Translations under genes and position numbers: made by a program | The notes under the pieces: generated by a model | What the model was told of the DNA's origin: nothing | What the model saw: the letters and a program-made list of their open reading frames with translations, nothing else | Database searches by the model: none | Shown: positions 7,054 to 57,911 of the stretch, in pieces | Numbering within the stretch: the stretch's first letter is position 1 | How the letters are laid out: each line of letters begins with the position of its first letter | Assembly: GCF_006345805.1 (NCBI RefSeq) | Contig: NC_043000.1 | Location: 90,210,001-90,274,000, forward strand | Direction of reading: 5' to 3' | DNA: 64,000 bases | DNA from: Octopus sinensis | Taxonomy: Eukaryota

Positions 7054-7086
<33 letters not shown>

Positions 7087-7222
7087 AGCTACTACTGTTA
7101 CTACTACTACTACTGCTACTACAACTACTACTACTACCACTGCTGCTACAACTACTACTGCTGCTGCTACCACCACCACCACCACCACCACTACTACTAC
7201 TACTGCTACTACTACTACTACA
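6926..7222. repeat. (ACT)n/(ACC)n/(GCT) trinucleotide array
   Basis: Seen directly; it yields poly-T/V/S/L ORFs. Confidence 0.95.
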
Positions 7223-8577: not shown

Positions 8578-8721
<144 letters not shown>

Positions 8722-9636: not shown

Positions 9637-9750
9637 ATGCACTTGTGCTGGTGCCACATAAATAACATCCATGCTGGTGCTATGTAAGTAGCACCTGTGT
9701 TGGTACCATGTAAAAAGCACCCAGCACACACTGTAAAGTGGTTGGTGTTA

Positions 9751-10023
<273 letters not shown>

Positions 10024-10138
10024 TCATAATGATCTTTAAGATACTTGTTTAGAGAAATCAGCAAACAAATTATTTGCTGATATCTGCCAAACTGATGATG
10101 GGATGTCATATGCATGGAGAGCAGTGACAATCGATGTA

Positions 10139-12506: not shown

Positions 12507-12593
12507 CTTTAACTGTTCACAGAGGGAAGAACCAGAGTGAAGACTTTTAAGCCCATTTTCAGCTCCCTTCTTCCAAAAGACACTTCCATGTTG
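12507..12593 (-). CDS. XYLB: Xylulose kinase exon 5 (QHGSVFWKKGAENGLKSLHSGSSLCEQLK), 87 nt
   Basis: AAG acceptor after a T-rich tract and GTAAGA donor. Completes the FGGY GQQHG motif. Confidence 0.95.
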
Positions 12594-13086
12594 CTTTTAA
12601 AAAGAAATAGAATGATTGAAGTAAGGTATTTGTTTAAACTATTTATAGATTGTTGTTTTTTAAATCTTGTGTTACATATTTTATTAAGTCCTCTGCCAAG
12701 ATACCTTACTCCATTTTGGTGAGGGGTGAAAGTTTATGAGGGTATTTAGTGGATGTGCCAGGTGCAGGCTTGGCTATTTGGTTAAGAAGCTTACTTTGCA
12801 ACCACATGGTTTTGGGTTCAGTTCCACCACACAAAACCTCGGACAAGTATCTTCTAGGGATTTTTGGAAGTTGTTCGTAGTCTTTGGATTGAAAGACCTC
12901 CAAAATAGGCCATTGAGTAAGCACTCAAAATTTCCTTGAATGCAACAATGCTCTTTCCCTCCACTAATCTTCCAAATTACCCAACTGGTAAAGGAATATA
13001 AGCACTTGACATTCTAGATACCTGATGGACAATTTTCGTTTACACTTGGTCCAAGGATATAGCTATGTCAAGGAGACAAGCTACAG

Positions 13087-13151
<65 letters not shown>

Positions 13152-13827
13152 GTGTCATGCCTTACAGGCATCAGAAAAAAGGACCTCCATATTAAAGTCT
13201 GAAAATTCATGATTCTTCCTGGGAAATATACAGCAGTGGTTTCTCATTGCTTTCTGTCAGTTTATTTACAGATTATTCTGCTATTCTCCTGCCCTCTTGA
13301 CCTTACCCTTAAAGTACAGGTCCTATTTAACCCTTAAGCAGTGGGGATGGTTCATGTGATATCAAGGCATGTTCACATACTGATGCTACTGTGTGAAGCA
13401 TATCTAGAGAGCCAGCCCTCCTTTGAGTCTTGTATGCCTTTGCTACAACTCTTCTGCTGTTTGACCCATAACTGGGGCCCTGGGTCAGAGCAGACTTGGA
13501 AGTAGTGGTGATTAAGTGGCAACTCCACATTCCTCCAAATTCCTGGGCTCCCAAGCTGGAGCTTCACCACTGGATGCAGCTTAATGTCAAACATGGGGCA
13601 AGACTATGATGTTTAGAAAGAAACACCTTGCAAACTAACCAGGAATCTCTGCAGATACCACAATCTCATCACATGACTGTATATCATCAATTACAGTATA
13701 CATAGTCCACAGGGAATTAGTAGTAAAGGAACTGTCCAGATAATAAAACACATCTCATCTACAAGCAAAATAGCAGATGTTCCAGTCTGATTGGACATAA
13801 ACCAGAGCATAACAGGGCAGTCAGACT

Positions 13828-14240
13828 CTCTTACTCTTTTTACTCTTTTACTTGTTTCAGTCATTTGACTGTGGCCATGCTGGGGCACCGCCTTTAGTCG
13901 AGCAAATCGACCCCAGGACTTATTCTTTGTAAGCCTAGTACTTATTCTATCAGTCTCTTTTGCCGAACCGCTAAGTTACGGGGACGTAAACACACCAGCA
14001 TCAGTTGTCAAGTGATGTTGACAACCAATGTTGGGGGGGACAAACACAGACACACAAACATATACACACACATACATATACAATGGGTTTCTTTCAGTTT
14101 CCGTCTACCAAATCCACTCACAAGGCTTTGGTCGGCCTGAGGCTATAGTAGAAGACACTTACCCAAGGTGCCATGCAGTGGGACTGAACCTGGAACCATG
14201 CAGTTCGTAAGCAAGCTACTTACCACACAGCCACTCTCAC
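13828..14240 (-). mobile_element. Abundant tRNA-head SINE (GGAGTGGCTGTGTGGTAAG family with internal microsatellite)
   Basis: Colinear copies at about 7695-8215, 22780-23132, 27630-27930, 30007-30395, 33105-33610, 37197-37568, 59621-60060, 61580-61710 and 63540-64000. Confidence 0.85.
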
Positions 14241-15215
14241 TACCTCTGCCTCAACTTTTTACATAGCTCTCTCACAGCTTGTTTCTGGGGAAGATTGTTC
14301 ATCCTGCTTATAACCTTGATCCAGTTTCTACCATCTGGAAGTCTGGCTTGGACCATAACACAAGAACATTTACAAAAATTTGGGTTCAATGACTCATACT
14401 GCTGACCAGTGTAGACTAAATAATAACAATAATTACAATTTCTATATTTTTGCCACAAGAGTGACTGAGGAAGAATCATTACAAGGACAGAGTATATTAT
14501 ACATTAACAGTTAATACATCACAATACAACATAATACATAATTCAATAATACATAATACATATTACAACATAAAACTATAATATATAATACATACATATT
14601 ATAACATAATGAAAGAAGCAGAAGAACACCAATTGAAGGAAACTCTGAAGAGTACTGGTACAAACCAAAATTCCTGGGAAATGAACAGCCAAGCAATGCA
14701 CTGTTTGGTGTAAGCAGGAATATCCCATTTTGGAGAGAACAGAATATCATAATGAAACGACATCATAGGAAAGATAGAGCAACTCAATGCCAACCAACAC
14801 CTAGAGCCCAATGCGATTCTTGCAATAGGCTGTTTAGAGCAAGAACTGAGGCTATTAGCAATTAGAAAGCCCATCATGTGCTGCAGCACAAATGAGCCAC
14901 CCATACACACTTTGGACTGAAATGTACTAAGTGCTTGAAAATAAGTCCTTGCTGATGGCTATGACATAATACAACTTAATATAAAATATATACATGATAC
15001 AACATAATACATACATATTACAGCATAATGCAAAAATAATGATGGTGCTTACGCCAATAAGAACTGTTTTTAATTTCATCACAAGGCTAGTAGTAGCTAT
15101 TTTTTAGAAGACCCCAGTACTTGACTGATACTTTATTTTGTCAAGTACTGGAATATTCAAATACTGGAATAAAAACAATATTAATAAGAGCAAAACAATA
15201 ACAAGTATCACAAAC

Positions 15216-15296
15216 CTGGCCAGATCCAGATATGGCAGCAACTTTTGAAAAGTCTAAATTATCTGCCTTCAGTTTGTCTAGAAGAAGGTCCAATGC
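15216..15296 (-). CDS. XYLB: Xylulose kinase exon 4 (ALDLLLDKLKADNLDFSKVAAISGSGQ), 81 nt
   Basis: TTATTAG acceptor and CAG|GTTTGT donor. Matches [27 protein letters not shown]. Confidence 0.95.
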
Positions 15297-16187
15297 CTAA
15301 TAAGGATACAAAGCAGAAATATACAGCTAAATATGATTGGTTTTTCTTTTTCCTGATGAGATAAGATATTATTTAATATATTTAATAAAGAGAAGATTAA
15401 AATTGATAGAATAGACCTTAGTATGTTCAATTCTAGCAAAATGGGTAAAAAGTAAAGCTGATTACAGTCAGTATTGAAATTAGTGCTCAGAAAGAAGAAC
15501 ATGAATGTTGTTGTATATTTATTCCGGTATTTTCCTGCATCAATTATTTGCCACTTTTAAATATATAAAATGATACCATTGTATTAAAAGTCAGTGTAGT
15601 TTATAAATATATATACATAACTGTGTAAAAAAGTGCTGATCTCTAACTGTGGAGGGAACCTGTGGAAGAGGTAGACCAAAGAAGACATGGGACAAGGTGG
15701 TGAAGCATGGTCTTCCAATGGTGGTGGTGGTGGTGATATATTTTCATTAATATTTAGCAGAAACAACAGAATCACTCAAGATTTTTATGCATTGACAGTT
15801 ACCATACTAGTTACAGATCAAAGAGTCGTGGATTTATAGAAATGGTGATATTAATATTTCCCTGGATTGTTCTAGAATAAATTTTAAAAACAATTACAAT
15901 GTCAGATGTTCCAGTTTGATCAAACATAAACTATGGCAGAACATGATAGTTAAGCAGTAATGATAAATAATAAAGGTGATCTATATGCTCACTACTTCTG
16001 TCCAAATGCTTTATATAGCTCCCTCTCAGCTTGTTTCTAGGGAAGACTAGCCATCGTGCTCATAACCATGACCCAGTTTCTATCCATCTAGCTTCTGCTA
16101 AATATTAATAAAAACATACATACACCTGTATTTTGAGTTCTATTTTTCCTGTTTGCATCACCATACCTGTATATGCATGTGTATACG

Positions 16188-16252
<65 letters not shown>

Positions 16253-16254
16253 TC

Positions 16255-16548
16255 CTTCTCGAGTCACACCTGGCTCATAGGGCCGGTTTCCCGGTTTCCT
16301 TGGCGTATAGGTTCCCCACCTGGACAGGACGCCGGTCCGTTGCAGGTGAGCTGTAAGATGCAGGAGGAAAGAGTAAGAGAAAGTTGTGGCAAAAGAATCA
16401 GCAGAAGTTCACCATTACCTTCTGCTGGAGCCGCGTGGAGCTTAGGTTTTTCACTCGTAAACACACATATCGCCCGGTCTGAGATTCAAACCCACGATCC
16501 CTTGACCACAAGTCCACTGTTCTAACCATTAGGCCATGTGCCTCCACA
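16255..16548 (-). mobile_element. tRNA-derived SINE (second family)
   Basis: Minus-strand head GTGGAGGCACATGGCCTAATGGTTAG...GGGTTTGAATC with A/B-box-like motifs. Confidence 0.65.
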
Positions 16549-16912
16549 TATATATATTACCAGTAACACTGAGGAAGAGGGCTAGATGCATTTTTTGCAT
16601 AACTGGGCATTAAGCTCATGTAATTGATGTTTTGCACATCTTCTGAAACACACGCACTATGTGTGTGTATATGTGTGTGTGTGTGTGTGGGGGGGGGGTG
16701 CGCGTGCACGCACATACATGTGTGTGTAGTGATAAACTAGATTATTTCCTCATACCTAAATGCTTCATGCAGTTGACATTAATCAATTGTATTTGTCAGA
16801 CTCTAAAAACGTCTAACATAGATGTCTCATGAACACTTTGCATCTTACCACAAAAACACAAATAGGAAATTAGAATGACAAAGGAATAAAAAATTATGTC
16901 ATGAACTTCATT

Positions 16913-16993
16913 AGCTTACAGCTGTTTCTGCTATAAGATGGAATGCACTCATAGTTGAATGCTTGAGTATCACCCTATAGCTTCATCAGAGCT
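16913..16993 (-). ncRNA. Minimal type-I hammerhead-like motif in XYLB intron 3, sense strand
   Basis: AGCT-CTGATGA-A-GCTATA...TATAGC-A-GAAA-CAGCTG-TA-AGCT, with palindromic stem III and an A/A apposition closing stem II. Confidence 0.6.
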
Positions 16994-17125
16994 TCAACTA
17001 TAAAGTGCAATTTGCACAAATTGCACTTAATCTTTGAAGCTCTTGCTGTAAAGTATTACATGGTTATTCACATTTTAGAAAAGAAAGTGGGAGGTGATCA
17101 GGGTCAAATGTTTGTTTATAATTAC

Positions 17126-17195
17126 CTGGATCCACATTAAAGTGGGTGCTGTCACAGTAACCCCATCTGAGTGGGAATGCACACCACCAGTTGTC
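17126..17195 (-). CDS. XYLB: Xylulose kinase exon 3 (TTGGVHSHSDGVTVTAPTLMWIQ), 70 nt
   Basis: TTACAG acceptor and GTAATT donor. Matches XYLB [23 protein letters not shown]. Confidence 0.95.
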
Positions 17196-18089
17196 CTGTA
17201 ATGAAAATTGTATAAGAATTACTGAGAGTGCCACAAAATATATTTATTCCATGTAAGTACTGTAATATAGCAGTTAGGATTCATAGAAACAGATGCAGAA
17301 TTTGGAATAACATAGCAGTTAGTGTCATAAACATAGGAGGAGAGTTAAGGGTGACTTATCTCACTTGTCCACGACTCTGAGGTGTTTTACACTCAGTGCT
17401 TAGAGAGTGTATACACTCTGACATGCTATTGCAGCCACCAGAAAATACACAAAGCATATACATTAAGTATATGTAGCTAATAATATCTATTATACTAGAA
17501 CTGTTTTTATTTTAAATGTAAACAGAAATTAGAGTTCCTAGTCACAGAGAGTTAAGGATAACATAGAAGTTAGGGCTTGCAGACATCATAGAGTTATGGG
17601 TAAGGTGAGAGTTAAGGTTCAAAGAAAACAGATTATTTCCAAAGATCTGCTGTTTTATTTCTCCAAACTAAAAACCAAGTTTAAAGAATAAGCATCTCTA
17701 AGGCAGCGAAAAGAAACCAATGAACCATGGACAATGAATAAAAAAGATCTAGAATGATTGATAATGATGATGAGGAGGAGGGGGAGGGGGAAGGATGGTG
17801 ATGGTGGTGGTGGTGGTGATGATGATGATGATGAAGAGGAGGGGGAAGGAGGGTGATGGTTTTTTTAAAGTTTAGTACTTATTCTATCATTCTCATTTGC
17901 CAAACCACTATGTCAAGGGGATATAAGCAAACCAACACCAGTTGCCAAGCAGTGGGAGAGACAAACACAAACATAGACATATATTCATACACACACACAC
18001 ACACAAATACACACAAATACACACACGTACATACACGCATATATGACAGCCTTCTGTCTACCAAATTTCACTGACAAGACATTGGTCCT

Positions 18090-44122: not shown

Positions 44123-45272
44123 ATATGAAATTTTTTTAAATGACAAAATACAGTGAAATTATTTAAAGTAAAAGCTAAATTTTTTTTTTTAACGTTACCA
44201 AAATTATCAAATTTTCACTTGAAAGAAAATAAGATATGTAAAAAAAAATGCTAAACAACAAAGTTACCAAACCAGAAGAGGAGGGTGGATCTTTGGAACA
44301 AATTACACAAAAGCCTTAATTTTTTTTCTCTTTTTTTTTTGTCTCATCTAATTACATTCAACACCCAACTATCTGCAGGTAATGAAAGAACAAGATACAA
44401 TACTAATACTACCAATAATAATAATTCTAACAAGTTTCAATATGGTCAGGGCATTAATTGTCAAAGTTGCTGACTAATTCAACTAAATGAGTAGATGCTT
44501 TTTTGTTACTCTTTTAAAGCAAGAAAAAAAAATTATAACCAATTTTAAAATAGGTATAATAGAAAACATCTTTGCATATTTTTAATTTTGTAAAAAATAT
44601 CTCCATGAGGTTTTCCATCATCATTCTTCTACTACCTGTTTGTTCCTCTTTAAAATAAAACAATAGAATCGTGTTTATTCTTTTTTACTTGGTTGCAGTT
44701 CTAAATGAAAATCTGCTTTTTTTTTTCTTTCAGTTCCAGTCAATAAACTCTTCATTGAGTCATTGAATGAAAAATGTTTCCAGAAAATGAACTCAGAATT
44801 TATTCCGTCAGTTCGAACCCACAAGAGGCAGTGTCATTAGAAAAAAAAAAGGGAAAAAAAAAACAGCCCAAGTTATGTGCGCATGTGTGTATGTGTGTTG
44901 GCAAGGTTATCTTTTTTTTTTTTTCTGTTGTAGTTATTGTTTGCATTTTCTTTTTTTTTTTTTTACATTTTTTTTTCTTGTTAAAGATGGAGACTGAAGA
45001 GTGACTAATTATGCAATGATTGACGAAGTGAAGTGAGACTGATGTAAACAGAAAAAAAAAATGTGTATATAAAAAAAGAGAGAGAGAGTTAGTAAAAACA
45101 TTCAAGTATGATAGATATGTAGAAGGGAAAAAAACAGAGAGAAAGAGAAATAGAGAGAGAGAGAGAGAAGAATGGTAGTAATATATGTGGATTAAAGAAT
45201 GTAAATAAAATGTTAAGGAAGTCAAAGTAAAAAAGTGAGAAGGTGGTAGAGAAGAACCTAGCTAAATGTGTG

Positions 45273-48200
45273 TTACTTGAGGCCAAGAAATCCATACAAA
45301 TGTTCAATATGTTTTATAACAGTGTCTAAGAAATTGGGTTTTTCTCTGTGGATGGACCGTGCCCCAGAGAGAGCTGTGGAAGTGGTACTGGTAGTTGTGG
45401 TTGTCGATGTTGTTGTTCCTGATGTTGTGGCTGCTGTCCCTTTGTTAGGACTGTGCTGTTCACATTTTGTATCAGTTTCTTTGCCTTCTTCTGAAGACAG
45501 CCTACCACTACCAGTCTGGCCAGCACCACTACCAATTCCACCAGTTCCACTAAGAGAGCTTTCAGATGCTATCTGGAAACCAGGGGACACCTCTTCAGCA
45601 TTGTTGTCGGTTTCCATTTCATCAGGGTCGTTACTGAATCGCTGGCGCTTTGTAGGTGTCTCCATAGACTCATCTGGTTCCGAACTGTTTAAGTGTTCCG
45701 AACGAGTAAGCTTTTCGGCTGTTACTGGGACTTCAGTTAACGTCTCAGCAGTAGTAATAGGGTCGATGTTAATGCCTGGATTGATACTAGTTGTGGTGGG
45801 AGATGAAGTAACAGCTGATGAAGTTGGAAGAGGACTGGAAAGAGGTGATGATGAAGATGTCTTACTGCTGTTGGTAGCAACCGATACTGCAGTGGGAACG
45901 GTAGATGTAGCAGCAGTGGTAGTAATTGTAGGAGTATTCGTAGTAGCAGTAGTAGTAGTAGTCGTAGTAGATAAGCTAACAACACTGGTTGAACTAGCAG
46001 CAAGTGAAGAATCTTCATTTTCAGATCTCTGACGTTGTTGGTAATCACAACACACTCTGTGAATGTGTTGCAGGCTGTCTGTTAGTAAACTACTAAGTTG
46101 TTTTGGAGGTTGAACAGAAAATATTAAAAGCATGGCTCTAAGGTCACCATTAATACGTTGGCATATAGAAAAAAGTTCCTGATCAGTTTTTACATTTTCT
46201 GTTGCTGATTTTTCAGCGGTGATAGAAGCTACAAGACTATCAAGTAAACTTTGACCTTGATCATTGAGGACTTGTTGGTGAACCTTAGGAAAGAAATTGC
46301 AGAAAAATTGGTAGATTATAGGGCTGTTGAGAGACATGCGTTCATCCAATAGAACTGCATTGACATACTCAATGAAATAATAGCTGTTGCACAATACTTT
46401 GATGCAACTCTTATCAAACTGCTCTAAATGATAGATTTCATTCCACAATTTGGCAAAATAAAGTGAATGAAGAGGTACCCCTTCATAAGCAACCATTGCA
46501 CTCAGATTGATCAAGTCTTTAGTAAGGTTATGTTGATTGACAGCAACCCGGCATAGCAAGTCAATAAACAGGTGATATTGATTGAAGAAGTCAGACAGTG
46601 CAGCATCATAACAATCATCAACATTTCGGGAAGCTTCCAGTTGGTTGGAGTGTAGCAACATCTGAAACTGAGGCCTTGGTGGTCTGACATTAGATTTAGA
46701 GCAGATGGTCTTCTGACCCCTGCGTGGGAAATAAGGACCAACAGACACTGGTAGGTTGGTGTCCTGAAATGCTTTGTGGGAATCTCGCAGAATTGTAACA
46801 ATAGTAGGGATTATGTCCTTTTGGAAAGTGAGTACCATTTCTTTGAGGACTTCAAAACAACTCTGACGGATTTCAGGTGGAGTATAAGAATTCAAGAGAG
46901 TAAGAAGCTTGCGAACAAACTCTGCTCTTTCATTCCAGTTAAAGATGCATTCCTTTACATGTAAAGTACTTGGGTTCTTCCGTTCCAAGTAATGCCTGGC
47001 AACTTTGAGGACAGGCAATAGCAAGGCAAGGAGATCAACAATATCGCCAGTCACATGACACGCTGTAGCCTCGTGGTACATCACATGAAGAGTAAAGAAT
47101 GCTTCAGTTATCATTTGCAAACCTTGCTGGTAAATAATGAGTAGTCTGTCATCTGTACTATCAACTAGAATTTTGAAGCTGTTGATGAGTGTTTGCCAGC
47201 CAGATCGAGCATCCAAGTGCTGCAAGTACATCTGGATAGTAGTTCGCCTGAAGTTATTGATGGCCTTCAATTCTTCTTCAGAACTGTCTTGGTGCTTCAT
47301 TGACATGACTCGCATCATTTTGAAGAGTTCTTCAACAGCAGCAGTATACTGGGCAGGATAAGGAGAAATGTTCTTAAATGCCCACAGAATATTTTGGTGC
47401 TGAGCGAGCTGCCTTGTGAAAGAACGTGACTGTTGACAACAGATGCGCAGTAGGCCATAGTAGGCTGGCAACATACAACGATTGAACATGACAACTTCCT
47501 GATCATCGTGGTCAGCGAGGATATAATTAAAAGCAATATTTTTACAGACATGTGTGTTGGTGACAATAAGTTTTACATTCTCTGGGCAGTCTAGACACAC
47601 TTGATACCAGAACATAAGCATGGCTTGTTTGTTGTGGTGCATTGAGATCTGAGGTTCTGATAACTTGGGTTGAAATAGTTGCCATAAATCAGCAAAATAG
47701 CGACCAAACATTAACTTTTCCTTTTTAGAAATCAGACAGTATGTGACAACAGCAAAGTAACAAACTAGTTTGCTGGTGCCGTGAACCTGAGGGTCAACAT
47801 AGAGACGTGCACGCGACAGCAGTGATAACAAATGCTCGTAGATTTGATGTAGAACAGCTAGTGCATCTGAGGAGAGTAGTAGTTCTTTATGTGGACTCAG
47901 TATGCTTCTCGCTGTGCGGAATGCTTGTCGAAAATTTAGGCTGGGAACTAAGGAAACCAATAAGAAACTTGCTGCATTTCTTACCCGTACATTGCCATGA
48001 GCAATAAGATAACCTTCGACCCAATTGTCCATCTGCTGTAGTACCCATGCATTGGCAATTTTATTCCTAGTGACCAAATTCGAGAGCCATTCAAGACACT
48101 GATGAGGACAACATTCTGTGAGCTCCCAGAATCGCTGAAGAATATACTGTAAAAAGGGAGGCATTCCTGGTGGACCTCCAATGAATTCAACTAATAAAGA

Positions 48201-51200
48201 CATTAACTTAAAAAATGGTTGCGCCTGTTCTGCATTCAGTTTTTTGACAGCATTGAAAAGCATCTGAACAATTGCCAATGCCAAAGAGTCATTCCAGCGA
48301 CAGAGACTAAAAATTAAATTGCACGTCTGCCGTACATTAATATGGTCTTTAATTTGATTGTAAAGGAATGGAAATCCTTTGCCACCAATGATGCTGTTAT
48401 AATCTTTTTCACTCAGGCGTAACTGATTGTCTTCTCCTCGTGACCTCTCCACCAGCTGTGCAATCAGCGCTATCATTTTATCTAGTGCCAGAGGTCTGTG
48501 CTTATCTTCAGGCATTGCAATGACGTCATCTTCTTCATCATCATCTGACAATATTTCAACATAATTTTCTTGAGCTTTCTGACCCATGTAGAAATTAACA
48601 ATTGCTGATATAGCATTGTTATTGATTAGGAAAAAACATTCTTCATCGCCCATCTTGGCAAATTCTAGAAGAAAACTGAAATATTCTGTTAGATACTTGC
48701 TGTGGGGTCGGACACCTTGCTCAAGAATTGCTAACATACGTCTGATAAATTTGGTAGCACATGTCTGACCACTGAGGCTGTTGGATTTGGTTTGGTCATC
48801 ATTGGGATTCCCTGAGGTTAGAAGGTCATACTGGGCATTTTTGAGTTGTGTAATTACGTGAACTAATAACCTCTGGAACATCTGGCGCACCATTTGGTTA
48901 GGACATTTAATTAATATCTGCTGAGGCCACCAATCACATTCTGCCATATGCTCCAGAAACCATTCACATGCAGCTTGGCAGGAATTAAACTGCTTTGTCA
49001 GAAGTTCAATCCACTGAAGCATAGTAGGTTTTTCTTTGGCATGAATATGTGTTTCTAAGACAAAGGACGCACTCAGCTGTGCAACCATCAGAGGCACTTT
49101 TCTTGGGTCATCTCGAGGTAATGTCGTTTGAATGTAACCACATAACTGTAGCATGAATCCAAAATAAGTGTGCTCGAATATATTTTTATCTTGTAGAAAC
49201 TGCATGTTGTCTTGCCATATCCAGTCAGCAAGTTCCTTTGACAAATCAAAGTTGAATTTCTGTGGCGGCTCTGATGCAGCATCAGATTCTTCATTAGGCA
49301 CTTCTTTCTTCTTCGGAGAACACCGTTCATAAAATAACATATAGGCACTGTTGGTCTTCTCAAAAGAAAAATCCATGAATTTGTCAGTAACAGAATCATA
49401 CGTTTTACTTGTCATTTCACCCCCGAAACACTCTGCAGCTATTTGGCTAGGATCAAATGGTTTCACTTCAGCATCATTAAATAGGTACCACTTATCAAAT
49501 CCAGTCTTAGACTGACTAATGCGATCTCTGATGAAACTATAATAGTGTCCTCCATCAGCAGTTCCCGTGTGTACGGTTACTCCAATCAGTTCATATTCAT
49601 GGCAGTCAGATTCATCTTTCGTGAAGGTGTCATTCTTATCGTCATCATCTTGTAATTTATCTGGTCCCATCAAGTTCACTTCCATGTACTGAGACATATC
49701 CAAGCGTAATGGAAAAGAAAAATGTGTATTTACCTTTTCTTTCATCATAGTCACCATATTAAAAGTGTATCGCATCGTATTAAAACACAGGATCTTGGGA
49801 AGTTTTCTGAAGCATGCACGCTTTTCAGCACGGACTTTCTTTTGACATTTTGAGCAAGTATACATATTATCTCCTTCAAGCATATCCTTCACTGTAACCT
49901 CATCAAGCGAATCATATAGATTTTTCATGTCTGTAACTTGGCATCGGACAGTATAAAACTCTTCAACAGTGCGACTGACATGTGGACAATCAAGAGAAAC
50001 AACATTATTAGTTAGGACACCACCAAATAAACTTTTCACCAGCTTTTTCATGTCTGAAGACATTTCTTCAAGTTTTGTTATTAAATCTGTAAAGAACTCA
50101 GTCATATCTTTTTGTTCTCCTGTGTTCAGAGGTTGTTTGTCCATGGTGTAAGTCTTGCAGAAGCTCTTGGGGTTATAAGCTTTTCTCTCACTTTCTTGAA
50201 GGTAAGCAAATATCTTCTGAAGCTCAATCAGTGTGGCTTCATGCTTTGTCTGGTCTGTACACTTTGCTTGTAATACTGACTGCCTTGCCTGTGGAATCAT
50301 ATACAAATGCTGCATACATGTAGCCATATAGCAAGTAGCTCCGAGGTTAGTCAAACCTACATAGCCACATTTTGATCGTCCATCCTCATGTGGCCAATAA
50401 TCCCATGGGTAGGGTACATGAGAATCTTTACTGTGCTGTTTCATCATTTTTTCATGCAGTATAGCATAGTTTTCAACACTACCTTTTACCATTTCTACAA
50501 GCAAATCGTAAGCAGCAGCTCGAGATGCTTGACTTTTACACTTAGGCAGCTTTCTGTTGACTGGTGATGGCAACGCAAAGAGACACCAAAAAATGTCCTC
50601 AAGAAATACTCTACCATTTTCAGATGTTTTGAATGGTGGTTCATGTTTCAAAATAGCAGTACAAAGATTTAAAAGACCAATCAGGGCATCATCCTCCTCG
50701 TAACCATTCCTGGTTTCATAAAAAGAGCGAGAGATTATATGATTAGCAATTTCTTTACATAACATATCTAAATTCACGAGACTGTCAGATTTAGTGTTTG
50801 CATCTTCTTTTGAAATGTTATCAACAAATCTGCATACCAACCAGAAATAGTCACGGCAACCAGGGCCATATGTCTCTTTCTTCTCCTCTTGCAGGTAGGC
50901 ATCATTTACTCGGGGTTTTATTAATAGAGCTTCTGGTAGAAATGACAGCATACTAGATAGTATGGGTAACAGAAATGCATAACCATTTCTGTTTTCCGAA
51001 GTCTTTCCTAAGCATAATTGATAAAGTCCAGTACAAACTTCCTTGCGGACGCAGGGTTCTGGGGCTTCCAGGGTTAACCTTTTCAGCCAAGAATTGAAAT
51101 TTGGAGATGAACAAAATGCATCTTTTAGTTCTTCACATGAATATGCCCAAGATACAAGAAAATTTAAAGCATAATGAACAACTTCTGACCTCCCCCAAGT

Positions 51201-54200
51201 GCCTGTATTGCATAAATTGTTTTCTATTGGTATAGCAGCATCAAACAAGATTTGCATGATGATCTGTAAGTCTGTATTGACATTTAGCATTGACAGAATG
51301 GTTTGGTTGAGACGAGGTACAACAATTTTATCACAATTACTTTTTTGACGTTTCATTTTCTTACGGGGTAACTCATAATTTTCAAAGAGGTCATCATGGC
51401 CTGCTTCAGCATCTGACCTTTCCACAGAAAACTGACTTATTAGACGTAGCAAATAAGCCAAGCATTCTTGATTCCACTGGTTCCAAGTTTCATCTGCTTT
51501 GGCTTGCAAGGTACTTGATTTAAATATATCAACTAAATGACTGAGCCCTCCTTTTGAAATGAACTGCTTGGTCCAAACTTCTTCAGGAACTTCCAGACCT
51601 TCCAGAACTTGATCACTATCAGCATCTCCTCCTCCTCCAGATCGAGAAATTGATTTTTTCTTACATTTTGGATTTTTTGATAATGCTTCAACTATCTGTA
51701 AAGAATACATTAAACGGTGTGGTCTTTGTGGATCTAGTAGCCGATTCCAGTCAATAGGCTCTTCAGGTGGAGTCTCTTCTTTGTAGGGAGTTGATGGCAT
51801 AATACTTCGGAAGCCATATAACATTTCAGGACTTGTTGGTAATAACATCAACAATTCCCAAACCCGCCGAGAAAATATTTTGCCTTTACTTTGTAAATTC
51901 CATCTTTCTTTACTTTCTAAATCAGCTGTTGAGAAGCTTAGATTACTCAGTTGTTCCAACAAAGTAAGCAGACGTTCGAAGCTTGGCTCTTGCAAAAGTA
52001 TCATCATAGGTAATTGTTCAGGACTAGGAGATGGTAGGCATGATGATGGCAATGTTCCATCCATCTTTCTCTGTGGTCTACTTGCACCAACAGAAACAAA
52101 AACAAGTTGCAAGTCCTTAAACTGCATTTCACTCAAAGTTTTCTCATCGTTATCTACAGTAAGCTCCTGCCCAAGAGTAATCATCCGTATTGGCCCATCC
52201 CCCAGCATAGCGCCAAGGATAGGAGACAATATTGAATTACCATGGTTACTAGAGGACTGCTGGCGTTGAAGTTGTTGCTGTTTCTGGAGAGCTTCCCACC
52301 ACCGAGCAACTTCAGCCCGTAATTCTGCAATGAGATCAGTAGACAACATATCTAATGGAGTTTTTTCTGAGATACCAGCTGGCTGTAAGAGAATTCGAAT
52401 TGGGCTTGACTGTTTCTCGTGTACATTACATTGGTGACTCACAATGCCATGTCCATCGATTTGCCAGTTTCTGAGGTGGTAAGCATATCTTTTTCGAAAA
52501 CCTTCCAAGTGATTTTTTAATAAAATCAAACCTCTTTGAATAACAAGAAGATTCATGTCGGGATTTTCTTCAACTTTCTGAGAGGCAGTTAAAAGACTGT
52601 CCATGCATCGACGAATAAATTCATCTTCTTTTTCCAACAGTCCATTTCCATAATTGATGTAATAGTTATTCAAGAACTGGATGGCTGTGATACTGACGTC
52701 TGTATTCAAAGCCCGTAGAGCAATTTGCCACAGCTGGTCCATGCCGCACACTTGGTCCTCAGACAACTGATTATCTATAGAAGCATTTGCAATTCTTGCC
52801 AAGTGTGATAATTGTTGGAAAAGATTCAAACCGATCATACTCATTGATTCAGGTTTAAGCTGAGGCATTTTCTCAAGAAATATGTGCTTGAATGTTTCCA
52901 AACACATGGCATGGTGATGCTCTTTGCTCTTGGCTTGATTAAGAAACCAGCTCAAGCATTCATCAGAACATTCTGGATCTAAAGCAAGACAAGCCCACAA
53001 AGTATCCACCTGTTCTTGACTTAGACGGAAACTATCTGGTGATCCAGGAGCACTGAACACACCAGTTAAAAACAAAAGCCTCACCTTAATTTGTTCCTTG
53101 TGACTGTAGAGGGATGTACTTTTCTGTAGATCACATTTTCGGCTCTCAGTATAATGGATAAGATCACTAAAAAAATGAGACATCATATTCAGTTCTTTTT
53201 CTGCCCACATAGTCACAGCATGGTTGTCAGAGCCACTGCGGTACTGTTGAAAAGAGCTGAAGATTTTGGGCAGAAGACGCAGAGATACCACTACAGACCG
53301 GTGCGCAGCCACATTTTCAATGCATGCTTCAATGAACTTGATTTTAATGCGCCTATCTGTTGAAAAGCACACTAAAGTGTAAAGAGCTTTCTCTGCTTCA
53401 ACAACCAAGCCATCGGGTAGCAAACACGCCATGTCATCTTGCACAAGATCCCAGAGAAGCGTGTTCCCTTTCTTGCAGACATCATCAAATGTAAAATCGG
53501 TACAAGATGAAACTGAAAGTTCTTTCTGAGATGGTCTGGGATGAATGACATGTGGCATGTGAGTATGATACATTGATGCCATACTGGCGAGATGTTGTTG
53601 CATTTGGTGCGTATTGAAATGAGGATGTGCATTGATCTGAGCTAATTCCTCATCACTGAGAACTTCTTCCCCATCAAAATCTGCCATATTTTTTTCTGAT
53701 TTTGTACTCATTCTGGAACTGTGGCAGCTACCTTCAGGACTCAATATGTCTTCAATATAATCACTTTGGATATGTCCATGTGGGTGAGCTTGCATATGTT
53801 GGATATAATTAGCACAATCAAACATTTCGGCTTCATCAGCACGGTTCTCAAACTCCTGAGCAGATTGGGAGGAAGCCACACCTTGAATACTGCTGTCAGC
53901 ACTGTCGTGGTTGGCTAATGTGGACGGTCTGGCTTCAGAATCATGAGAATCTCGTGAATCCTGTGATAGGTTACCAGGATCTGAAATAGCCATTTTCTTT
54001 TCACTGTCCCCACCAACTTCCAAATCTTTACAGTGACCAGTAATACCATCACTATCACCACGAGCTTCAAGAGAAACTGAACCAGGATGCAAGCTTTGTT
54101 GAATTCTGTTCTGATTTTCAGACCTTTGCAACCCTGGCCGGATACGATAGCGTTTCTTGCCTTGTCGCTGAAGAACAAGACAAGCAGGTTGTTTAAGAAG

Positions 54201-56555
54201 TCCTTGCTGCTGGAGCTGTATATGATGTTCTTGCAGTGCATGTTGAGTCTCATAACGAAGTTTGGTCTCGTGCATTAGCTTTGCTCTTCTAGACTCGTTA
54301 GCATCAAAATCTGAACTGTCCTCACTCTCACCGTGACAAGAATGTTTCATATGTACCATTTTAGCATGCTTTAGAATCTCATCATCAGATTCTTCATATT
54401 CTGACTCCATTTCTTCCTCCTCCTCTTCTTCTTCCACTTCCTCCTCCTCTTCTTCTTCTTCTTCCTCCTCCTCTTCTTCTTCTTCCTCCTCTTCATCATC
54501 ATCGTCTTCATCAGAACATGTACCTTGCTCTGTATCACGATAAGCTTGAGCGTTTCGGTTTCTAGGGGGCCTTTGCTGACATTTTAATGGCACTGGCTGT
54601 CTTTTGACACCTCGGCGTTTTTGCATTCCATGTTTCAGTGATGTGCATATTTGACCTTCTCCAGCGCTAGAACCACTACATTCTACATCACTTTCGCTAC
54701 CACTACTGCCACCTCCCACCTGGTTAGGAGCCACAAACTCTTGACCAAGGCCAGTGAGCTGCCGATGAGTACCTTCATCCATGTCGCTTTCATCACTGTT
54801 GTCACTGTTGGCCGAAAACTGCTCGCAGCTTTTCTGTTGTTTCTCAGAACAATCATCGTGTTTCTTGGCATGAGAAATCTGTTGTCGTGTTGAGCCAGCT
54901 TTGTTTTCAGCCTTGTTCAACTCTTTTTGATCATCCTCTGAAGGCAATTCCTCATTTTTATTATCAACCATTCCAATTCTCTTGTTGCTGTCCATTTCAG
55001 GGACTTTGTCGGTCTCCCCTTCAGAAAGTTGTAGACTTTCGCTGCTGCTCATTTCTGGTTTGCTTGATTTACCATGTTCTAATTCTTCTTCCTCTTGTTC
55101 AATAGCAGCTACAATGCTCTGTGGCTGGTCAGCTGGCTGTTGTTGTTGGTGATGGACGGCAGCATTATGGCTCTGTGATGTAACACAAGTGCTCCAGATG
55201 CACTTGAGGAGAGCAGATGCTAAATATAAAGTAGACTCAGTGTGTGCAGAGGGATCAAGGGCAGATACTAAGTTAGACAAATGCTGAACCAATTGCAGTT
55301 CTAAATTTTTTATAAGGGGAATCAATATATCATAAACTTGCTTACTACAATGTTTCATTTGACTGGCAGTCCATATACAGTCGATATGTTCATTTGTGAT
55401 TTTTCCTTCAACGGCAAGAAAATTTAAAATAATCTGGCTTTGTTTGATGATTTCCACATGCAAATTAGGACCAAAAATATGCTCAATAATCTTATTTTCT
55501 AGAAGCCATTTAGCTAAATGATTACCAACATTTTCTGCATCTACTAAAGTATCGTTATTGCAGCATTCATTATACAAATCAATCTGACGGTTAATCTGAG
55601 CTATACCAGCCAGTCGAATTGTCAGAGTTGAACAAGTGAAATATTTAAAGGCTAAATCCAAACCTTCTTTGTCATATGTAAAATGTGTATCCAACGGTTC
55701 TTTCACAGCTGCCCACATGAGGTCTGTCATGTTCCGGGTGCCGGCCATTCGCAGGTCTTTATCGGATAATTTACACATATAACGAATTACAGCAGTTCGT
55801 AATGGCACAATACATTGCATCACAGTAGCGATATTCATCCAAAGACGAAGATTTGCAATAATGTTGATGAGAGTATGAGCCACTGTGAATGGAAGCGTGT
55901 CCGGTGTAGCTTTCTCGAAGCATTGTTGCAGTGCTTGGACACCGTTACTATCACAGAAAAAACAAACATTGCGCAAGAGATACAGAGGAACTTCAGAATC
56001 GGAGATTTCACAATAATTGTTCAAGGCTCGAGTTTCCTGCTGAGACAATTCTTCTAGAGATGAATGAACGACATGTTTGTAAGCCACATACGAGGGGAAG
56101 TTCATGAGAAAGACTTTCGTAACTACTTGAAGTAATTGGTCTTTTTCTTCCATGGCCCAAACTTCGGATTCATCGAGTTCTTCTGCATCATTTTTTTCCG
56201 TTTCTTCCGATGACAAGCCATCAATTGACGATTTGTTCTTGTCAGAAATATCAGAAACAGCATCTTCAGAACAATGATCACGCTTTTCTTGTTTTTCTTT
56301 TTCCTTGGCGTAGTCATCAGGCAGAGTCTGAATGTGCCGAATCGCAACAGTCAAAACGATTTGAACAATATTGTTCAATCGTTCAAAGTTCTTAAATTCT
56401 TTGTAGCAGCACATACATTGTTTCTGAGGCCATATATTTACGTATTGAATCACAGACAGAATCTCATTCTTTCCCAGACGAAGACCACCACCGCTGTGAA
56501 GCCGCTCATCGTGGCTATCGAATAAGGACAACAGGCCAGAGCATACATCACACAT
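45273..56555 (-). CDS. USP34: Ubiquitin carboxyl-terminal hydrolase 34, single-exon 3760-aa ORF
   Basis: Uninterrupted ORF. The ATG at 56555 gives MCDVCSGLL (human USP34 starts MCENCADLV); the track's start at 56576 is a GTG, and an in-frame TAA lies at 56601-56603. Cys box GYVGLTNLGATCY (Cys codon 50331-50333), His box VHTGTADGGHYYSFI (His 49545-49547) and WYLFNDAEV (Asp 49473-49475) are intact. USP34-specific blocks include KSEKNMADFDGEE, HIFGPNLHVEIIKQ and FMDFSFEKTNSAYMLFYER, with a ubiquitin-like segment near 52090-52410. Stop TAA at 45273-45275. Confidence 0.97.
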   Translation of the reverse strand: MCDVCSGLLSLFDSHDERLHSGGGLRLGKNEILSVIQYVNIWPQKQCMCCYKEFKNFERLNNIVQIVLTVAIRHIQTLPDDYAKEKEKQEKRDHCSEDAVSDISDKNKSSIDGLSSEETEKNDAEELDESEVWAMEEKDQLLQVVTKVFLMNFPSYVAYKHVVHSSLEELSQQETRALNNYCEISDSEVPLYLLRNVCFFCDSNGVQALQQCFEKATPDTLPFTVAHTLINIIANLRLWMNIATVMQCIVPLRTAVIRYMCKLSDKDLRMAGTRNMTDLMWAAVKEPLDTHFTYDKEGLDLAFKYFTCSTLTIRLAGIAQINRQIDLYNECCNNDTLVDAENVGNHLAKWLLENKIIEHIFGPNLHVEIIKQSQIILNFLAVEGKITNEHIDCIWTASQMKHCSKQVYDILIPLIKNLELQLVQHLSNLVSALDPSAHTESTLYLASALLKCIWSTCVTSQSHNAAVHHQQQQPADQPQSIVAAIEQEEEELEHGKSSKPEMSSSESLQLSEGETDKVPEMDSNKRIGMVDNKNEELPSEDDQKELNKAENKAGSTRQQISHAKKHDDCSEKQQKSCEQFSANSDNSDESDMDEGTHRQLTGLGQEFVAPNQVGGGSSGSESDVECSGSSAGEGQICTSLKHGMQKRRGVKRQPVPLKCQQRPPRNRNAQAYRDTEQGTCSDEDDDDEEEEEEEEEEEEEEEEEEEVEEEEEEEEMESEYEESDDEILKHAKMVHMKHSCHGESEDSSDFDANESRRAKLMHETKLRYETQHALQEHHIQLQQQGLLKQPACLVLQRQGKKRYRIRPGLQRSENQNRIQQSLHPGSVSLEARGDSDGITGHCKDLEVGGDSEKKMAISDPGNLSQDSRDSHDSEARPSTLANHDSADSSIQGVASSQSAQEFENRADEAEMFDCANYIQHMQAHPHGHIQSDYIEDILSPEGSCHSSRMSTKSEKNMADFDGEEVLSDEELAQINAHPHFNTHQMQQHLASMASMYHTHMPHVIHPRPSQKELSVSSCTDFTFDDVCKKGNTLLWDLVQDDMACLLPDGLVVEAEKALYTLVCFSTDRRIKIKFIEACIENVAAHRSVVVSLRLLPKIFSSFQQYRSGSDNHAVTMWAEKELNMMSHFFSDLIHYTESRKCDLQKSTSLYSHKEQIKVRLLFLTGVFSAPGSPDSFRLSQEQVDTLWACLALDPECSDECLSWFLNQAKSKEHHHAMCLETFKHIFLEKMPQLKPESMSMIGLNLFQQLSHLARIANASIDNQLSEDQVCGMDQLWQIALRALNTDVSITAIQFLNNYYINYGNGLLEKEDEFIRRCMDSLLTASQKVEENPDMNLLVIQRGLILLKNHLEGFRKRYAYHLRNWQIDGHGIVSHQCNVHEKQSSPIRILLQPAGISEKTPLDMLSTDLIAELRAEVARWWEALQKQQQLQRQQSSSNHGNSILSPILGAMLGDGPIRMITLGQELTVDNDEKTLSEMQFKDLQLVFVSVGASRPQRKMDGTLPSSCLPSPSPEQLPMMILLQEPSFERLLTLLEQLSNLSFSTADLESKERWNLQSKGKIFSRRVWELLMLLPTSPEMLYGFRSIMPSTPYKEETPPEEPIDWNRLLDPQRPHRLMYSLQIVEALSKNPKCKKKSISRSGGGGDADSDQVLEGLEVPEEVWTKQFISKGGLSHLVDIFKSSTLQAKADETWNQWNQECLAYLLRLISQFSVERSDAEAGHDDLFENYELPRKKMKRQKSNCDKIVVPRLNQTILSMLNVNTDLQIIMQILFDAAIPIENNLCNTGTWGRSEVVHYALNFLVSWAYSCEELKDAFCSSPNFNSWLKRLTLEAPEPCVRKEVCTGLYQLCLGKTSENRNGYAFLLPILSSMLSFLPEALLIKPRVNDAYLQEEKKETYGPGCRDYFWLVCRFVDNISKEDANTKSDSLVNLDMLCKEIANHIISRSFYETRNGYEEDDALIGLLNLCTAILKHEPPFKTSENGRVFLEDIFWCLFALPSPVNRKLPKCKSQASRAAAYDLLVEMVKGSVENYAILHEKMMKQHSKDSHVPYPWDYWPHEDGRSKCGYVGLTNLGATCYMATCMQHLYMIPQARQSVLQAKCTDQTKHEATLIELQKIFAYLQESERKAYNPKSFCKTYTMDKQPLNTGEQKDMTEFFTDLITKLEEMSSDMKKLVKSLFGGVLTNNVVSLDCPHVSRTVEEFYTVRCQVTDMKNLYDSLDEVTVKDMLEGDNMYTCSKCQKKVRAEKRACFRKLPKILCFNTMRYTFNMVTMMKEKVNTHFSFPLRLDMSQYMEVNLMGPDKLQDDDDKNDTFTKDESDCHEYELIGVTVHTGTADGGHYYSFIRDRISQSKTGFDKWYLFNDAEVKPFDPSQIAAECFGGEMTSKTYDSVTDKFMDFSFEKTNSAYMLFYERCSPKKKEVPNEESDAASEPPQKFNFDLSKELADWIWQDNMQFLQDKNIFEHTYFGFMLQLCGYIQTTLPRDDPRKVPLMVAQLSASFVLETHIHAKEKPTMLQWIELLTKQFNSCQAACEWFLEHMAECDWWPQQILIKCPNQMVRQMFQRLLVHVITQLKNAQYDLLTSGNPNDDQTKSNSLSGQTCATKFIRRMLAILEQGVRPHSKYLTEYFSFLLEFAKMGDEECFFLINNNAISAIVNFYMGQKAQENYVEILSDDDEEDDVIAMPEDKHRPLALDKMIALIAQLVERSRGEDNQLRLSEKDYNSIIGGKGFPFLYNQIKDHINVRQTCNLIFSLCRWNDSLALAIVQMLFNAVKKLNAEQAQPFFKLMSLLVEFIGGPPGMPPFLQYILQRFWELTECCPHQCLEWLSNLVTRNKIANAWVLQQMDNWVEGYLIAHGNVRVRNAASFLLVSLVPSLNFRQAFRTARSILSPHKELLLSSDALAVLHQIYEHLLSLLSRARLYVDPQVHGTSKLVCYFAVVTYCLISKKEKLMFGRYFADLWQLFQPKLSEPQISMHHNKQAMLMFWYQVCLDCPENVKLIVTNTHVCKNIAFNYILADHDDQEVVMFNRCMLPAYYGLLRICCQQSRSFTRQLAQHQNILWAFKNISPYPAQYTAAVEELFKMMRVMSMKHQDSSEEELKAINNFRRTTIQMYLQHLDARSGWQTLINSFKILVDSTDDRLLIIYQQGLQMITEAFFTLHVMYHEATACHVTGDIVDLLALLLPVLKVARHYLERKNPSTLHVKECIFNWNERAEFVRKLLTLLNSYTPPEIRQSCFEVLKEMVLTFQKDIIPTIVTILRDSHKAFQDTNLPVSVGPYFPRRGQKTICSKSNVRPPRPQFQMLLHSNQLEASRNVDDCYDAALSDFFNQYHLFIDLLCRVAVNQHNLTKDLINLSAMVAYEGVPLHSLYFAKLWNEIYHLEQFDKSCIKVLCNSYYFIEYVNAVLLDERMSLNSPIIYQFFCNFFPKVHQQVLNDQGQSLLDSLVASITAEKSATENVKTDQELFSICQRINGDLRAMLLIFSVQPPKQLSSLLTDSLQHIHRVCCDYQQRQRSENEDSSLAASSTSVVSLSTTTTTTTATTNTPTITTTAATSTVPTAVSVATNSSKTSSSSPLSSPLPTSSAVTSSPTTTSINPGINIDPITTAETLTEVPVTAEKLTRSEHLNSSEPDESMETPTKRQRFSNDPDEMETDNNAEEVSPGFQIASESSLSGTGGIGSGAGQTGSGRLSSEEGKETDTKCEQHSPNKGTAATTSGTTTSTTTTTSTTSTALSGARSIHREKPNFLDTVIKHIEHLYGFLGLK

Positions 56556-56600
56556 TCTCAGAATCTTGAGAAACACCGCAAGGAAATCTTGCTGAATAAA

Positions 56601-56618
56601 TTATAAGCGACTCGACAT
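56601..56618 (-). other. uORF3 (MSSRL*), in frame with USP34 and ending 45 nt before its ATG
   Basis: ATG TCG AGT CGC TTA TAA on the minus strand. Confidence 0.4.
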
Positions 56619-56625
56619 GACAGAA

Positions 56626-56670
56626 TCACAAAATCGAATCGAACGTGAGAAAAAGTTTTTTGTTTTCCAT
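56626..56670 (-). other. uORF2 (MENKKLFLTFDSIL*) upstream of USP34
   Basis: Hand translation with GGTATGG context. It overlaps a possible AAG|GTATGG donor. Confidence 0.4.
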
Positions 56671-56694
56671 ACCTTTTTTTTTTTTTTTAAGCAT

Positions 56695-56709
56695 TCAACA
56701 ATCCGCCAT
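56695..56709 (-). other. uORF1 (MADC*) upstream of USP34, strong Kozak context
   Basis: AATATGGCGGATTGTTGA read on the minus strand. Its presence in the mature mRNA is not established. Confidence 0.45.
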
Positions 56710-56712
56710 ATT
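56703..56712. promoter_or_regulatory. YY1/Pho-type motif CCGCCATATT in the USP34 leader or promoter
   Basis: Matches the YY1 consensus CCGCCATNTT, typical just downstream of housekeeping TSSs, in a relatively CpG-retaining zone. Confidence 0.45.
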
Positions 56713-57848
56713 TGTTTTTAGACGTTTTCTTTCACCGGGAAGAGAATTAAACTTAAACCAGAGTGACCTCCCTTGGCAGAAACAAATTTTCTTCAATTTC
56801 ATTTGTGCAAAATATGCCACAAACAACTTTATACACTAACTTTCTTCTTGACAGCGTTTAAGGAAAAAGACAACGTTTCAACATTAATCCAGTAAATGTT
56901 GAAGAAGTAAACTGAAACTATTACATCAGAACAAAAAATACAAACGGAAATTCGAATGTTTTTGTTTACCTCTGTTTCTCCTACCTCATCCACTCAATTT
57001 AAAGTTTTTTTAATCTCCGACAATAGAGAACGCACCCCCTGTCCTAAATCCATACGCGTTTATTTCCCCTTTATTCTATATTTACCGTATTTTTAATTTC
57101 TTTCGAAGTCTAGTCTTGGGGTCATTGTCGACAACATCGACCAATATAATGTATATTTAAATTATTATATATATTATATATTACTGATGGATCCTCATTT
57201 TATCGATCACGGAGGGAAGAAATGCAAAGACGGCACTGATTGTATTTGAACTAAATTTAACATTCAGTCCGAAGTCCAGTGCACTTATTTGCTACACGAA
57301 ATAATTTAACACCCACCATACCGTTAGGCTTTTTCACTATAAAAATATTATCGACTTCTGAAATTTTGTTACGAAAATAATAATAAAACGCCTTTATACC
57401 TAGATCAACTTTTATTCATTTTTAATGTTAGCTATATATTTTTAATAAAAAATTTTTTTTTCAATTAATCATTAGAAGGTTAGTTCATAAATTGCTTGCT
57501 TTCGGTACTTGATCGGAATTTTAAGAACATCATTGTTCTTTTAAAATTTTAAAACAACAACAATTTGAAGAATTGTTATAAATTAAGAATGTTAGTATGA
57601 GGTAACGTTTTTTTTTTTTTTTTGAAAGAGGGGGAAGTAGGAGTAGATATTGTTAAGGCGGTAAGAGGAACCTTGTTAAACACTTTATAAAACTCAGCAG
57701 AATCATTTCGAATACGTTTTGGGCTTCATTTTTTTTTTAATAAATAAAGCTTTATCATGTTTCAACTTTAACTGCGGATAAAACAAACGATAGAAAGACA
57801 AATAAAGGAAGCCAAAATAAAACTTTAAGAAATATTTTAGTGTCTTAC

Positions 57849-57911
57849 TTGTTGTGTACTGAAGTCAAATCCAAGATATATTCGGTCGCTGCAAATATTG
57901 GTGCTTGACAT
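57849..57911 (-). CDS. XYLB: Xylulose kinase exon 1 (MSSTNICSDRIYLGFDFSTQQ)
   Basis: Hand translation gives ATG at 57911 and the FGGY-kinase N-terminal motif YLGFDFSTQQ (human XYLB LGWDFSTQQ). A GTAAGA donor follows at 57848 (phase 0). Confidence 0.93.

Follow-up and report, generated by a model that had tools for sequence, protein, structure and literature searches.

The locus described here raises the question of how a gene that in other molluscs is divided into many exons came to be, in an octopus, one uninterrupted exon lying within an intron of another gene. The window (the whole stretch of DNA analysed, 64,000 nt in length) corresponds to positions 90,210,001 to 90,274,000 of contig NC_043000.1 of Octopus sinensis. 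The gene in question is USP34, and its host is the xylulokinase gene XYLB, of the FGGY family. Taking the evidence as a whole, we considered it probable that this is the working USP34 of the coleoid cephalopods, derived from an ancient retroposed copy that landed in intron 1 of XYLB and probably replaced its parent. A fuller history is put forward only tentatively: a USP34 mRNA of ~12 kb may have been retroposed on the coleoid stem or earlier, displaced the parent and served as the sole USP34 for more than 250 million years, a YY1-type initiator in its leader perhaps enabling this success.

Structure of USP34 and of its host gene

The gene occupies the following positions in the window.

45273..56555, minus strand: USP34 coding sequence (CDS), a single unbroken exon with the ATG at 56555 and 3760 codons plus stop, i.e. 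11,283 nt
45275-45273, minus strand: USP34 stop codon, TAA

This is the only open reading frame (ORF) of at least 300 amino acids (aa) in the whole window (45273..56576, minus strand, 3767 codons when counted from a GTG). We took the ATG at 56555 as the ancestral start because the N-terminus that it opens, MCDVCS, is identical in the orthologues of Solemya and Liolophura. Stop codons occur in the rest of the window with a frequency of 0.057 per codon, by which 3760 open codons would arise by chance with a probability of ~1e-96; the remaining two frames of the USP34 strand carry 179 and 351 stops.

In the encoded protein, Pfam recognised UCH (aa 2066-2409, E 1.2e-48) and DUF3517 (aa 2546-2828). 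The top match among solved structures was the catalytic domain of human USP34 (7w3r, E 2.5e-186, vs 1.8e-80 for USP9X), and all the top database matches were named USP34 or puf. Precisely, the best of them were the USP34 proteins of bivalves, gastropods, nemerteans and annelids (3250-3860 aa, ~60-67% identity), while vertebrate USP34 (~3540-3560 aa) matched with ~51% identity, and the BLASTP alignments with the orthologues covered octopus residues 1 to ~3757. The protein collection searched held neither a labelled cephalopod USP34 nor the window's own protein, hence the absence of cephalopod matches in it is no biological evidence. The Cys box, the His box and the FND motif are all there, with Cys2075, His2337 and Asn2360/Asp2361 as the catalytic residues. 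Because of this catalytic set, of DUF3517, of the end-to-end colinearity and of the MCDVCS start, we regarded the ORF as a complete USP34 coding sequence and no fragment; by the structure scores and the names of the database matches it is closer to USP34 than to the paralogues USP9X and USP24. The plus strand carries a 254-aa ORF (45268-46032) overlapping, in antisense, the Thr/Ser-rich 3′ end of USP34; rather than being a gene, it most likely reflects the low complexity of the coding sequence there.

Upstream and downstream of USP34, on the same strand, we found the exons of XYLB.

57849..57911, minus strand: XYLB exon 1, encoding MSSTNICSDRIYLGFDFSTQQ, followed by the GT donor gtaaga
17203-17120, 15278-15189 (weak), 12596-12507, 9963-~9860 and 8685-8587, minus strand: downstream XYLB exons, approximate, by tblastn
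~6560-6438, 4484-4395, 3129-3082 and 1125-1012, minus strand: downstream XYLB exons, approximate, by tblastn (continued)

The tblastn query was the human XYLB protein, and the exon matches are to be counted as a lead only. Beyond exon 1 there were at least eight of them plus the weak one, all within 1012..17203 on the minus strand, and the gene extends past the start of the window. When concatenated, the matches passed the Pfam FGGY_N profile (E 3.3e-9, 37.1 bits vs a cutoff of 28.8). XYLB is intron-rich in the conventional way, with at least 9-10 exons within the window. The USP34 ATG lies 1.29 kb downstream of XYLB exon 1, and the whole of USP34 is contained, in sense orientation, in the ~40-kb intron 1; USP34 is nested between two exons of an FGGY xylulokinase host, namely exon 1 and the match at 17203-17120.

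The public annotation of Octopus sinensis (GCA_006345805.1, CM016862.1:90200001-90264000) already contains this gene model: its USP34 call spans exactly 11,283 nt, equal to one CDS exon. It also contains, on the USP34 strand, a 531-aa FGGY_N/FGGY_C gene that starts 1,356 nt upstream and spans the USP34 locus. The original prediction, which was made from the sequence of the window alone, had described a full-length 3760-aa USP34 in one exon with an intact Cys/His/Asp set, and a host XYLB of ordinary intron-rich structure; both descriptions are borne out, the first by the unbroken 11,283-nt ORF, the full-length alignments, the catalytic residues and the public one-exon call, the second by exon 1, the further exon matches, the FGGY_N hit and the public FGGY gene call. 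In the literature searched we found no paper pairing USP34 with octopus and none on USP34 among those on cephalopods, squid or cuttlefish; papers pairing "intronless" with "coleoid" were found, none of them about USP34, and phrases such as "longest retrogene" were not found.

A single-exon USP34 could simply be the ordinary state of the gene in molluscs, a case that the original prediction had itself named as fatal to its proposal. This is not what we found. USP34 of the protobranch bivalve Solemya velum extends over 99,919 nt. When the Solemya protein was aligned to its own locus, it fell into at least 61 exon-sized segments (3028 of 3632 aa covered, with 17 uncovered gaps implying more exons), and the octopus protein mapped to 66 separate segments of the same locus, whose neighbour is a DEAD-box helicase gene. 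In the gastropod Aplysia californica USP34 spans 108,017 nt, and in the chiton Liolophura sinensis at least 10 exons, spread over 12.6 kb, are needed for the first 640 aa. Liolophura and Solemya have intron positions in common at octopus aa ~258, ~322 and ~442. We found no FGGY gene overlapping or flanking USP34 in any of the three, with flanks of 10 kb compared in Solemya and Aplysia and of 3 kb in Liolophura. Since the bivalve, gastropod and chiton genes are all intron-rich and un-nested, we attribute the same state, an intron-rich USP34 outside XYLB, to the molluscan ancestor. By this comparison the octopus gene lacks all the ancestral introns and sits at a new location (flanks compared over 3-10 kb).

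The same locus in a cuttlefish

A search with the N-terminal 480 aa of octopus USP34 returned three close, unlabelled matches, which lie on sequences referred to as L003, L004 and L005. L003 (match P0139) is the end of a 526-kb contig of the European Nucleotide Archive (ENA) assembly ERZ21867824. It aligned with positions 56821..46027 of the window in one high-scoring segment pair of 10,864 nt at 76.9% identity, and it covers octopus aa 1-3512 colinearly, with no intron-sized gap. XYLB exon 1 is found on the same strand, 3.4 kb upstream of the USP34 start; it reads ATG CAA CAA GAT CAA CAT ATA TAC CTG GGA ATG GAT TTC AGC ACT CAA CAA before GTAAGAC, so that it ends IYLGMDFSTQQ|GTAAGAC, with a donor context equal to that of octopus.

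L005 (match P0142) is a 1,890-nt Logan contig assembled from SRR20545806, an Illumina RNA-seq run on poly(A)-selected RNA from juvenile Sepia esculenta (PMC9538352). It is 76.7% identical to the window and 94.3% identical at the nucleotide level to L003; from the latter value we assign L003 to the genome of a sepiid cuttlefish. L005 is colinear with the cuttlefish genomic contig from position -156 to aa 576, and USP34 is therefore transcribed in Sepia.

[quoted passage not shown] On these alignments, the intronless, XYLB-nested USP34 is at least as old as the octopus-cuttlefish split, i.e. more than 250 million years.

We also evaluated the selection acting on the gene, using Nei-Gojobori counts in our own script for the proportions of synonymous and nonsynonymous differences (pS, pN), the corresponding distances (dS, dN) and their ratio omega (dN/dS). 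Between octopus and L003 (3698 codons) pS was 0.834, hence saturated, and pN 0.081, falling to 0.03 in the catalytic domain; no stop interrupts the USP34 frame of L003 before aa 3734. Between L003 and the Sepia esculenta mRNA contig (567 codons) dS was 0.274, dN 0.010 and omega 0.036. A pN of 0.081 against a saturated pS, together with an omega of 0.036 between sepiids, shows strong purifying selection on USP34 in both the octopus and the cuttlefish lineages, as the original prediction had supposed.

These data bear directly on the idea of a recent retrocopy, made in the octopus lineage by the long interspersed elements (LINEs) or Penelope elements of the present-day window. The intronless structure, taken alone, would suit it. 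A sepiid, however, has the same gene nested at the same place, with synonymous divergence saturated, and the ten largest ORFs of the window apart from USP34 yielded no reverse transcriptase (RT) domain. We judged this idea very improbable, and an event that took place more than 250 million years ago cannot be traced to retroelements that the window carries today. The window had originally been described as full of RTE, L1 and Penelope-like RT sources, a description that our check, limited to the ten largest non-USP34 ORFs and without a search for degraded RT fragments, did not bear out.

A second, partial USP34 copy is present in the cuttlefish assembly, at L004 10360-11832 (ERZ21867824 ctg123041l). 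It is intronless, ~1.5 kb long and corresponds to aa ~131-681; relative to L003 it has 95.6-96.1% nucleotide identity, a ~213-nt internal deletion, stop codons and an omega of ~0.77. It adjoins the pol of a long terminal repeat (LTR) retrotransposon (rve, RT, protease). It has the appearance of a piece of the intronless copy, either a duplicate that was truncated or a fragment of a pseudogene, and not of a derivative of a parent.

Origin of the intronless copy

The sequence around the start and the end of the gene is relevant to how the copy arose. The features in question are the following.

56556..56821, minus strand: predicted 5′ leader and proximal promoter, a conserved block in which octopus and cuttlefish are 73% identical (263 nt aligned)
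56703..56709, minus strand: ATGGCGG heptamer in the context aaatATGGCGGa, single copy in the 64-kb window, at -154 from the USP34 ATG
44674..45272, minus strand: probable 3′ untranslated region (inferred from sequence), with AATAAA signals starting at 44804 and 44679
44976-44912, minus strand: A-runs of 9, 14 and 13 nt, downstream of the USP34 stop

The conservation of the upstream block stands out because synonymous sites are saturated between octopus and cuttlefish. The Sepia esculenta mRNA contig begins inside this block, 156 nt upstream of the ATG and within the ATGGCGG motif. The heptamer recurs at similar distances from the USP34 ATG (octopus -154, cuttlefish -158, Solemya -134, Liolophura -139; in the relatives it lies at ~7489-7495 of L003, ~9867-9873 of L002 and ~2862-2868 of L006), and at this point cuttlefish and Solemya have a 16-nt exact match, AAAAACAATATGGCGG, in common. 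Upstream of ATGGCGG we found no similarity of the cephalopods to Solemya or Liolophura. The heptamer resembles the YY1 core, AAnATGGCG, which in many genes sits a short way downstream of the transcription start site. In molluscan USP34 it would be an ancient leader or core-promoter element, and by this comparison the intronless gene would have kept the ancestral 5′ leader.

We also considered a chimeric transcript joining XYLB exon 1 to USP34. In octopus an acceptor-like tttattcag|caag at ~56596 would join the phase-0 exon 1 in frame with the USP34 ATG. We rejected this as the main mode: the equivalent cuttlefish stretch, at 44 nt, would not keep the frame, and the Sepia mRNA contig follows the genomic sequence without a break across the putative acceptor.

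Our proposal starts from a gene that is complete, lacks introns, is nested in XYLB at the same locus in two deeply diverged cephalopods, is under selection and is transcribed in Sepia, while in three other molluscan classes it is intron-rich and un-nested. Before the divergence of octopus from cuttlefish and squid, a complete processed USP34 mRNA, comprising the ~11 kb of CDS and a 5′ leader, would have been reverse-transcribed and inserted sense-wise into XYLB intron 1. The copy would have kept the parental leader, including the YY1-like ATGGCGG ~150 nt upstream of the ATG, and this leader may now be its own conserved proximal promoter/leader block; the copied leader would have helped the copy to be transcribed. 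From then on strong purifying selection would have acted over the full length of the copy, which probably superseded a parent of ~75-80 exons, in what is termed retrogene replacement, the product being an orphan retrogene. Retroposition is the most economical account because one event explains both the loss of ~60-78 introns and the landing in another gene's intron. Of the RT-mediated origin in the original prediction, the core is retained, given an intron-rich ancestor and the economy of a one-step intron loss; the framing that it implied, of something recent or specific to octopus, is abandoned, since the sepiid has the same locus.

The alternative to insertion at a new site is wholesale intron loss in place, in which a cDNA would have recombined with the ancestral locus and the nesting in XYLB would have arisen separately, by rearrangement. 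Leader retention fits a retroposed full-length mRNA, and it is equally expected under intron loss in place, where the ATGGCGG would naturally stand at its near-ancestral distance from the ATG; in addition, no poly(A) or target-site hallmarks were seen at the locus. Cephalopod genomes are heavily rearranged, and this makes lost synteny weak evidence. On the other side, such a history needs two independent rare events, i.e. the conversion of ~75 introns over ~100 kb and a precise nesting in the first intron of a host. USP34 is neither in nor beside an FGGY gene in Solemya and Aplysia (within the 10-kb flanks) or in Liolophura (within the 3-kb flanks), and the cephalopods share nothing with Solemya or Liolophura upstream of ATGGCGG. 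We considered intron loss in place distinctly unlikely.

Several observations weigh against an ancient retroposed replacement and have to be set beside it. The retroposition step rests on parsimony, and the conserved 5′ leader fits cDNA-mediated intron loss in place equally well. A search of the USP34 flanks for a poly(A) tract and target-site duplications gave no such duplication and nothing beyond low-complexity A-run matches (apart from these, the longest flank repeat was 16 nt and A-rich, against a shuffled maximum of 15), and there is no AATAAA directly upstream of the A-rich cluster at 44976-44912; because neutral sequence is saturated at such an age, these hallmarks would not be expected to survive. 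The sepiid label of L003 rests on similarity, and the evidence of transcription comes from Sepia esculenta, not from Octopus. L003 carries six small frameshifts relative to octopus, at aa 89, 419, 1101, 1421, 1506 and 2397 (positions 7911, 8910, 10945, 11902, 12159 and 14836), and L005 has, at ~1012-1014, an in-frame TAA at aa 286 (VK[E]PLD), where octopus and L003 have GAA, which divides the called ORF into 288 + 288 aa. A real decay of USP34 in sepiids would be a formal possibility.

Two of the six frameshifts fall in the region shared with L005 and are missing from it, the one at aa 419 being missing from L004 too; two others are T-run length changes. Because L003 has no stops, because omega is 0.036 and because both checkable frameshifts are missing from the mRNA contig, these frameshifts are probably assembly or sequencing errors. 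The TAA of L005 may be a polymorphism, or it may come from an error in sequencing or assembly. Accordingly the cuttlefish copy as a pseudogene was rejected, with no in-frame stops over ~3,700 codons. The frameshifts and the one stop in the Sepia RNA contig are also what could be said for the whole locus being an assembly artefact, a cDNA contamination or a non-functional processed pseudogene. We gave this practically no credence: the same structure, with genomic flanks including XYLB exon 1, is present in two independent assemblies of two distant species, and a pseudogene is at odds with 3760 open codons and with a pN of 0.08 against a saturated pS.

As for the fate of the parent, the copy could be an old functional retro-duplicate that replaced nothing, with an intron-bearing parent still present elsewhere in cephalopod genomes. 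The partial copy on L004 does show that USP34 sequence can duplicate in a cuttlefish genome. This copy, though, with its 95.6-96.1% identity, its truncation and its lack of introns, derives from the intronless gene, and conservation over the full length at an omega of ~0.04 is as expected of a sole orthologue. Two weaker points tell in the same direction: among the matches listed, the unlabelled N-terminal ones above 60% identity were only the intronless copy, L004 and the Sepia mRNA, and no second, more divergent sequence of molluscan grade, from the same assembly or from the Sepia RNA-seq, was among them. A coexisting parent is in our opinion unlikely, though it deserves to be taken seriously.

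Known retrogenes and the surroundings of the locus

Reverse transcription of cellular mRNAs usually gives short, 5′-truncated products, and functional retrogenes are mostly 1-3 kb in length. A selected coding exon of 11.3 kb, standing for a gene of ~100 kb and ~75 introns, stretches this size range, and if the replacement is true it is, to our knowledge, the longest functional retrogene replacement on record. We regard it as a long example of a known phenomenon, with no new mechanism.

The closest published case is SYCP1 of amphioxus, in which a single coding exon of ~3.2 kb (~3,200 nt) replaced a multi-exon parent and was described as retrogene replacement by an orphan retrogene (PMC5803294). 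As in AmphiSYCP1, one coding exon serves in octopus for a gene that is multi-exonic in most animals, at a locus unrelated to the ancestral one; in both cases the arrangement is common to related species, the gene is transcribed and conserved regulatory sequence lies near the start. Unlike AmphiSYCP1, the octopus coding exon of 11,283 nt is ~3.5 times longer, the event is much older (at least crown Coleoidea), the copy is nested sense-wise in the first intron of a host, and the loss of its parent is presumed.

TAF1L is a long functional retrogene of mammals, with a CDS of ~5.5 kb, which is young, testis-specific and coexists with its parent. Like it, octopus USP34 would be a processed copy of exceptional length, made from a large gene of housekeeping type, that has stayed functional; unlike it, octopus USP34 is ancient, has about double the length and apparently serves as the main copy.

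With vertebrate and molluscan USP34 (peptidase family C19) the octopus protein has in common the UCH domain, DUF3517 and the body of armadillo (ARM) repeats, from the first Met to the C-terminal region. It differs from them in having one coding exon vs at least 61 exons over ~100 kb, and in that its disordered acidic and Thr/Ser-rich regions are somewhat longer (3760 aa vs ~3550-3740). One repeat of the coding sequence falls in such a region.

54411..54509, minus strand: (GAA/GAG)n in-frame coding repeat, a poly-Glu tract inside the disordered region at aa ~480-1000

The pair also resembles other same-strand nested host-guest pairs, in that a single host intron contains the entire guest and different species preserve this arrangement. 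It departs from the usual ones in that the USP34 guest is far larger than the entire coding sequence of XYLB, and XYLB transcription must cross a guest unit of at least 12 kb together with its polyadenylation signals.

For the study of retrogenes, of intron evolution and of cephalopod genomes, the interest of the locus is therefore of several kinds. The presence of USP34 in XYLB intron 1 is a synapomorphy-like genomic character, of use for dating cephalopod-stem events. It is also a natural experiment on what a giant gene gains or loses without introns (alternative splicing, transcription time and intron-dependent expression), on a same-strand host reading through a guest of at least 12 kb for more than 250 million years, and on whether an initiator element embedded in the leader makes a retrocopy self-sufficient.

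The rest of the window contains some minor features. A 140-aa ORF at 5135-5557 (plus strand) weakly matches the helix-turn-helix (HTH) of the Mos1/mariner transposase (E 0.0014, below the Pfam cutoff). tRNA-like box-B motifs (e.g. gttcgaatccc) occur at 43350-43470 and at 58440-58560, both on the minus strand; ARAGORN found no tRNA gene anywhere in the window, and the two stretches suggest copies of a tRNA-derived short interspersed element (SINE). Finally, a microsatellite of the (TA)n/(TATAC)n type, ~600 nt in length, lies at 43461-44095, ~1.2 kb downstream of the USP34 stop, and because of it the GC content dips to 0.26 in 42001-44000.

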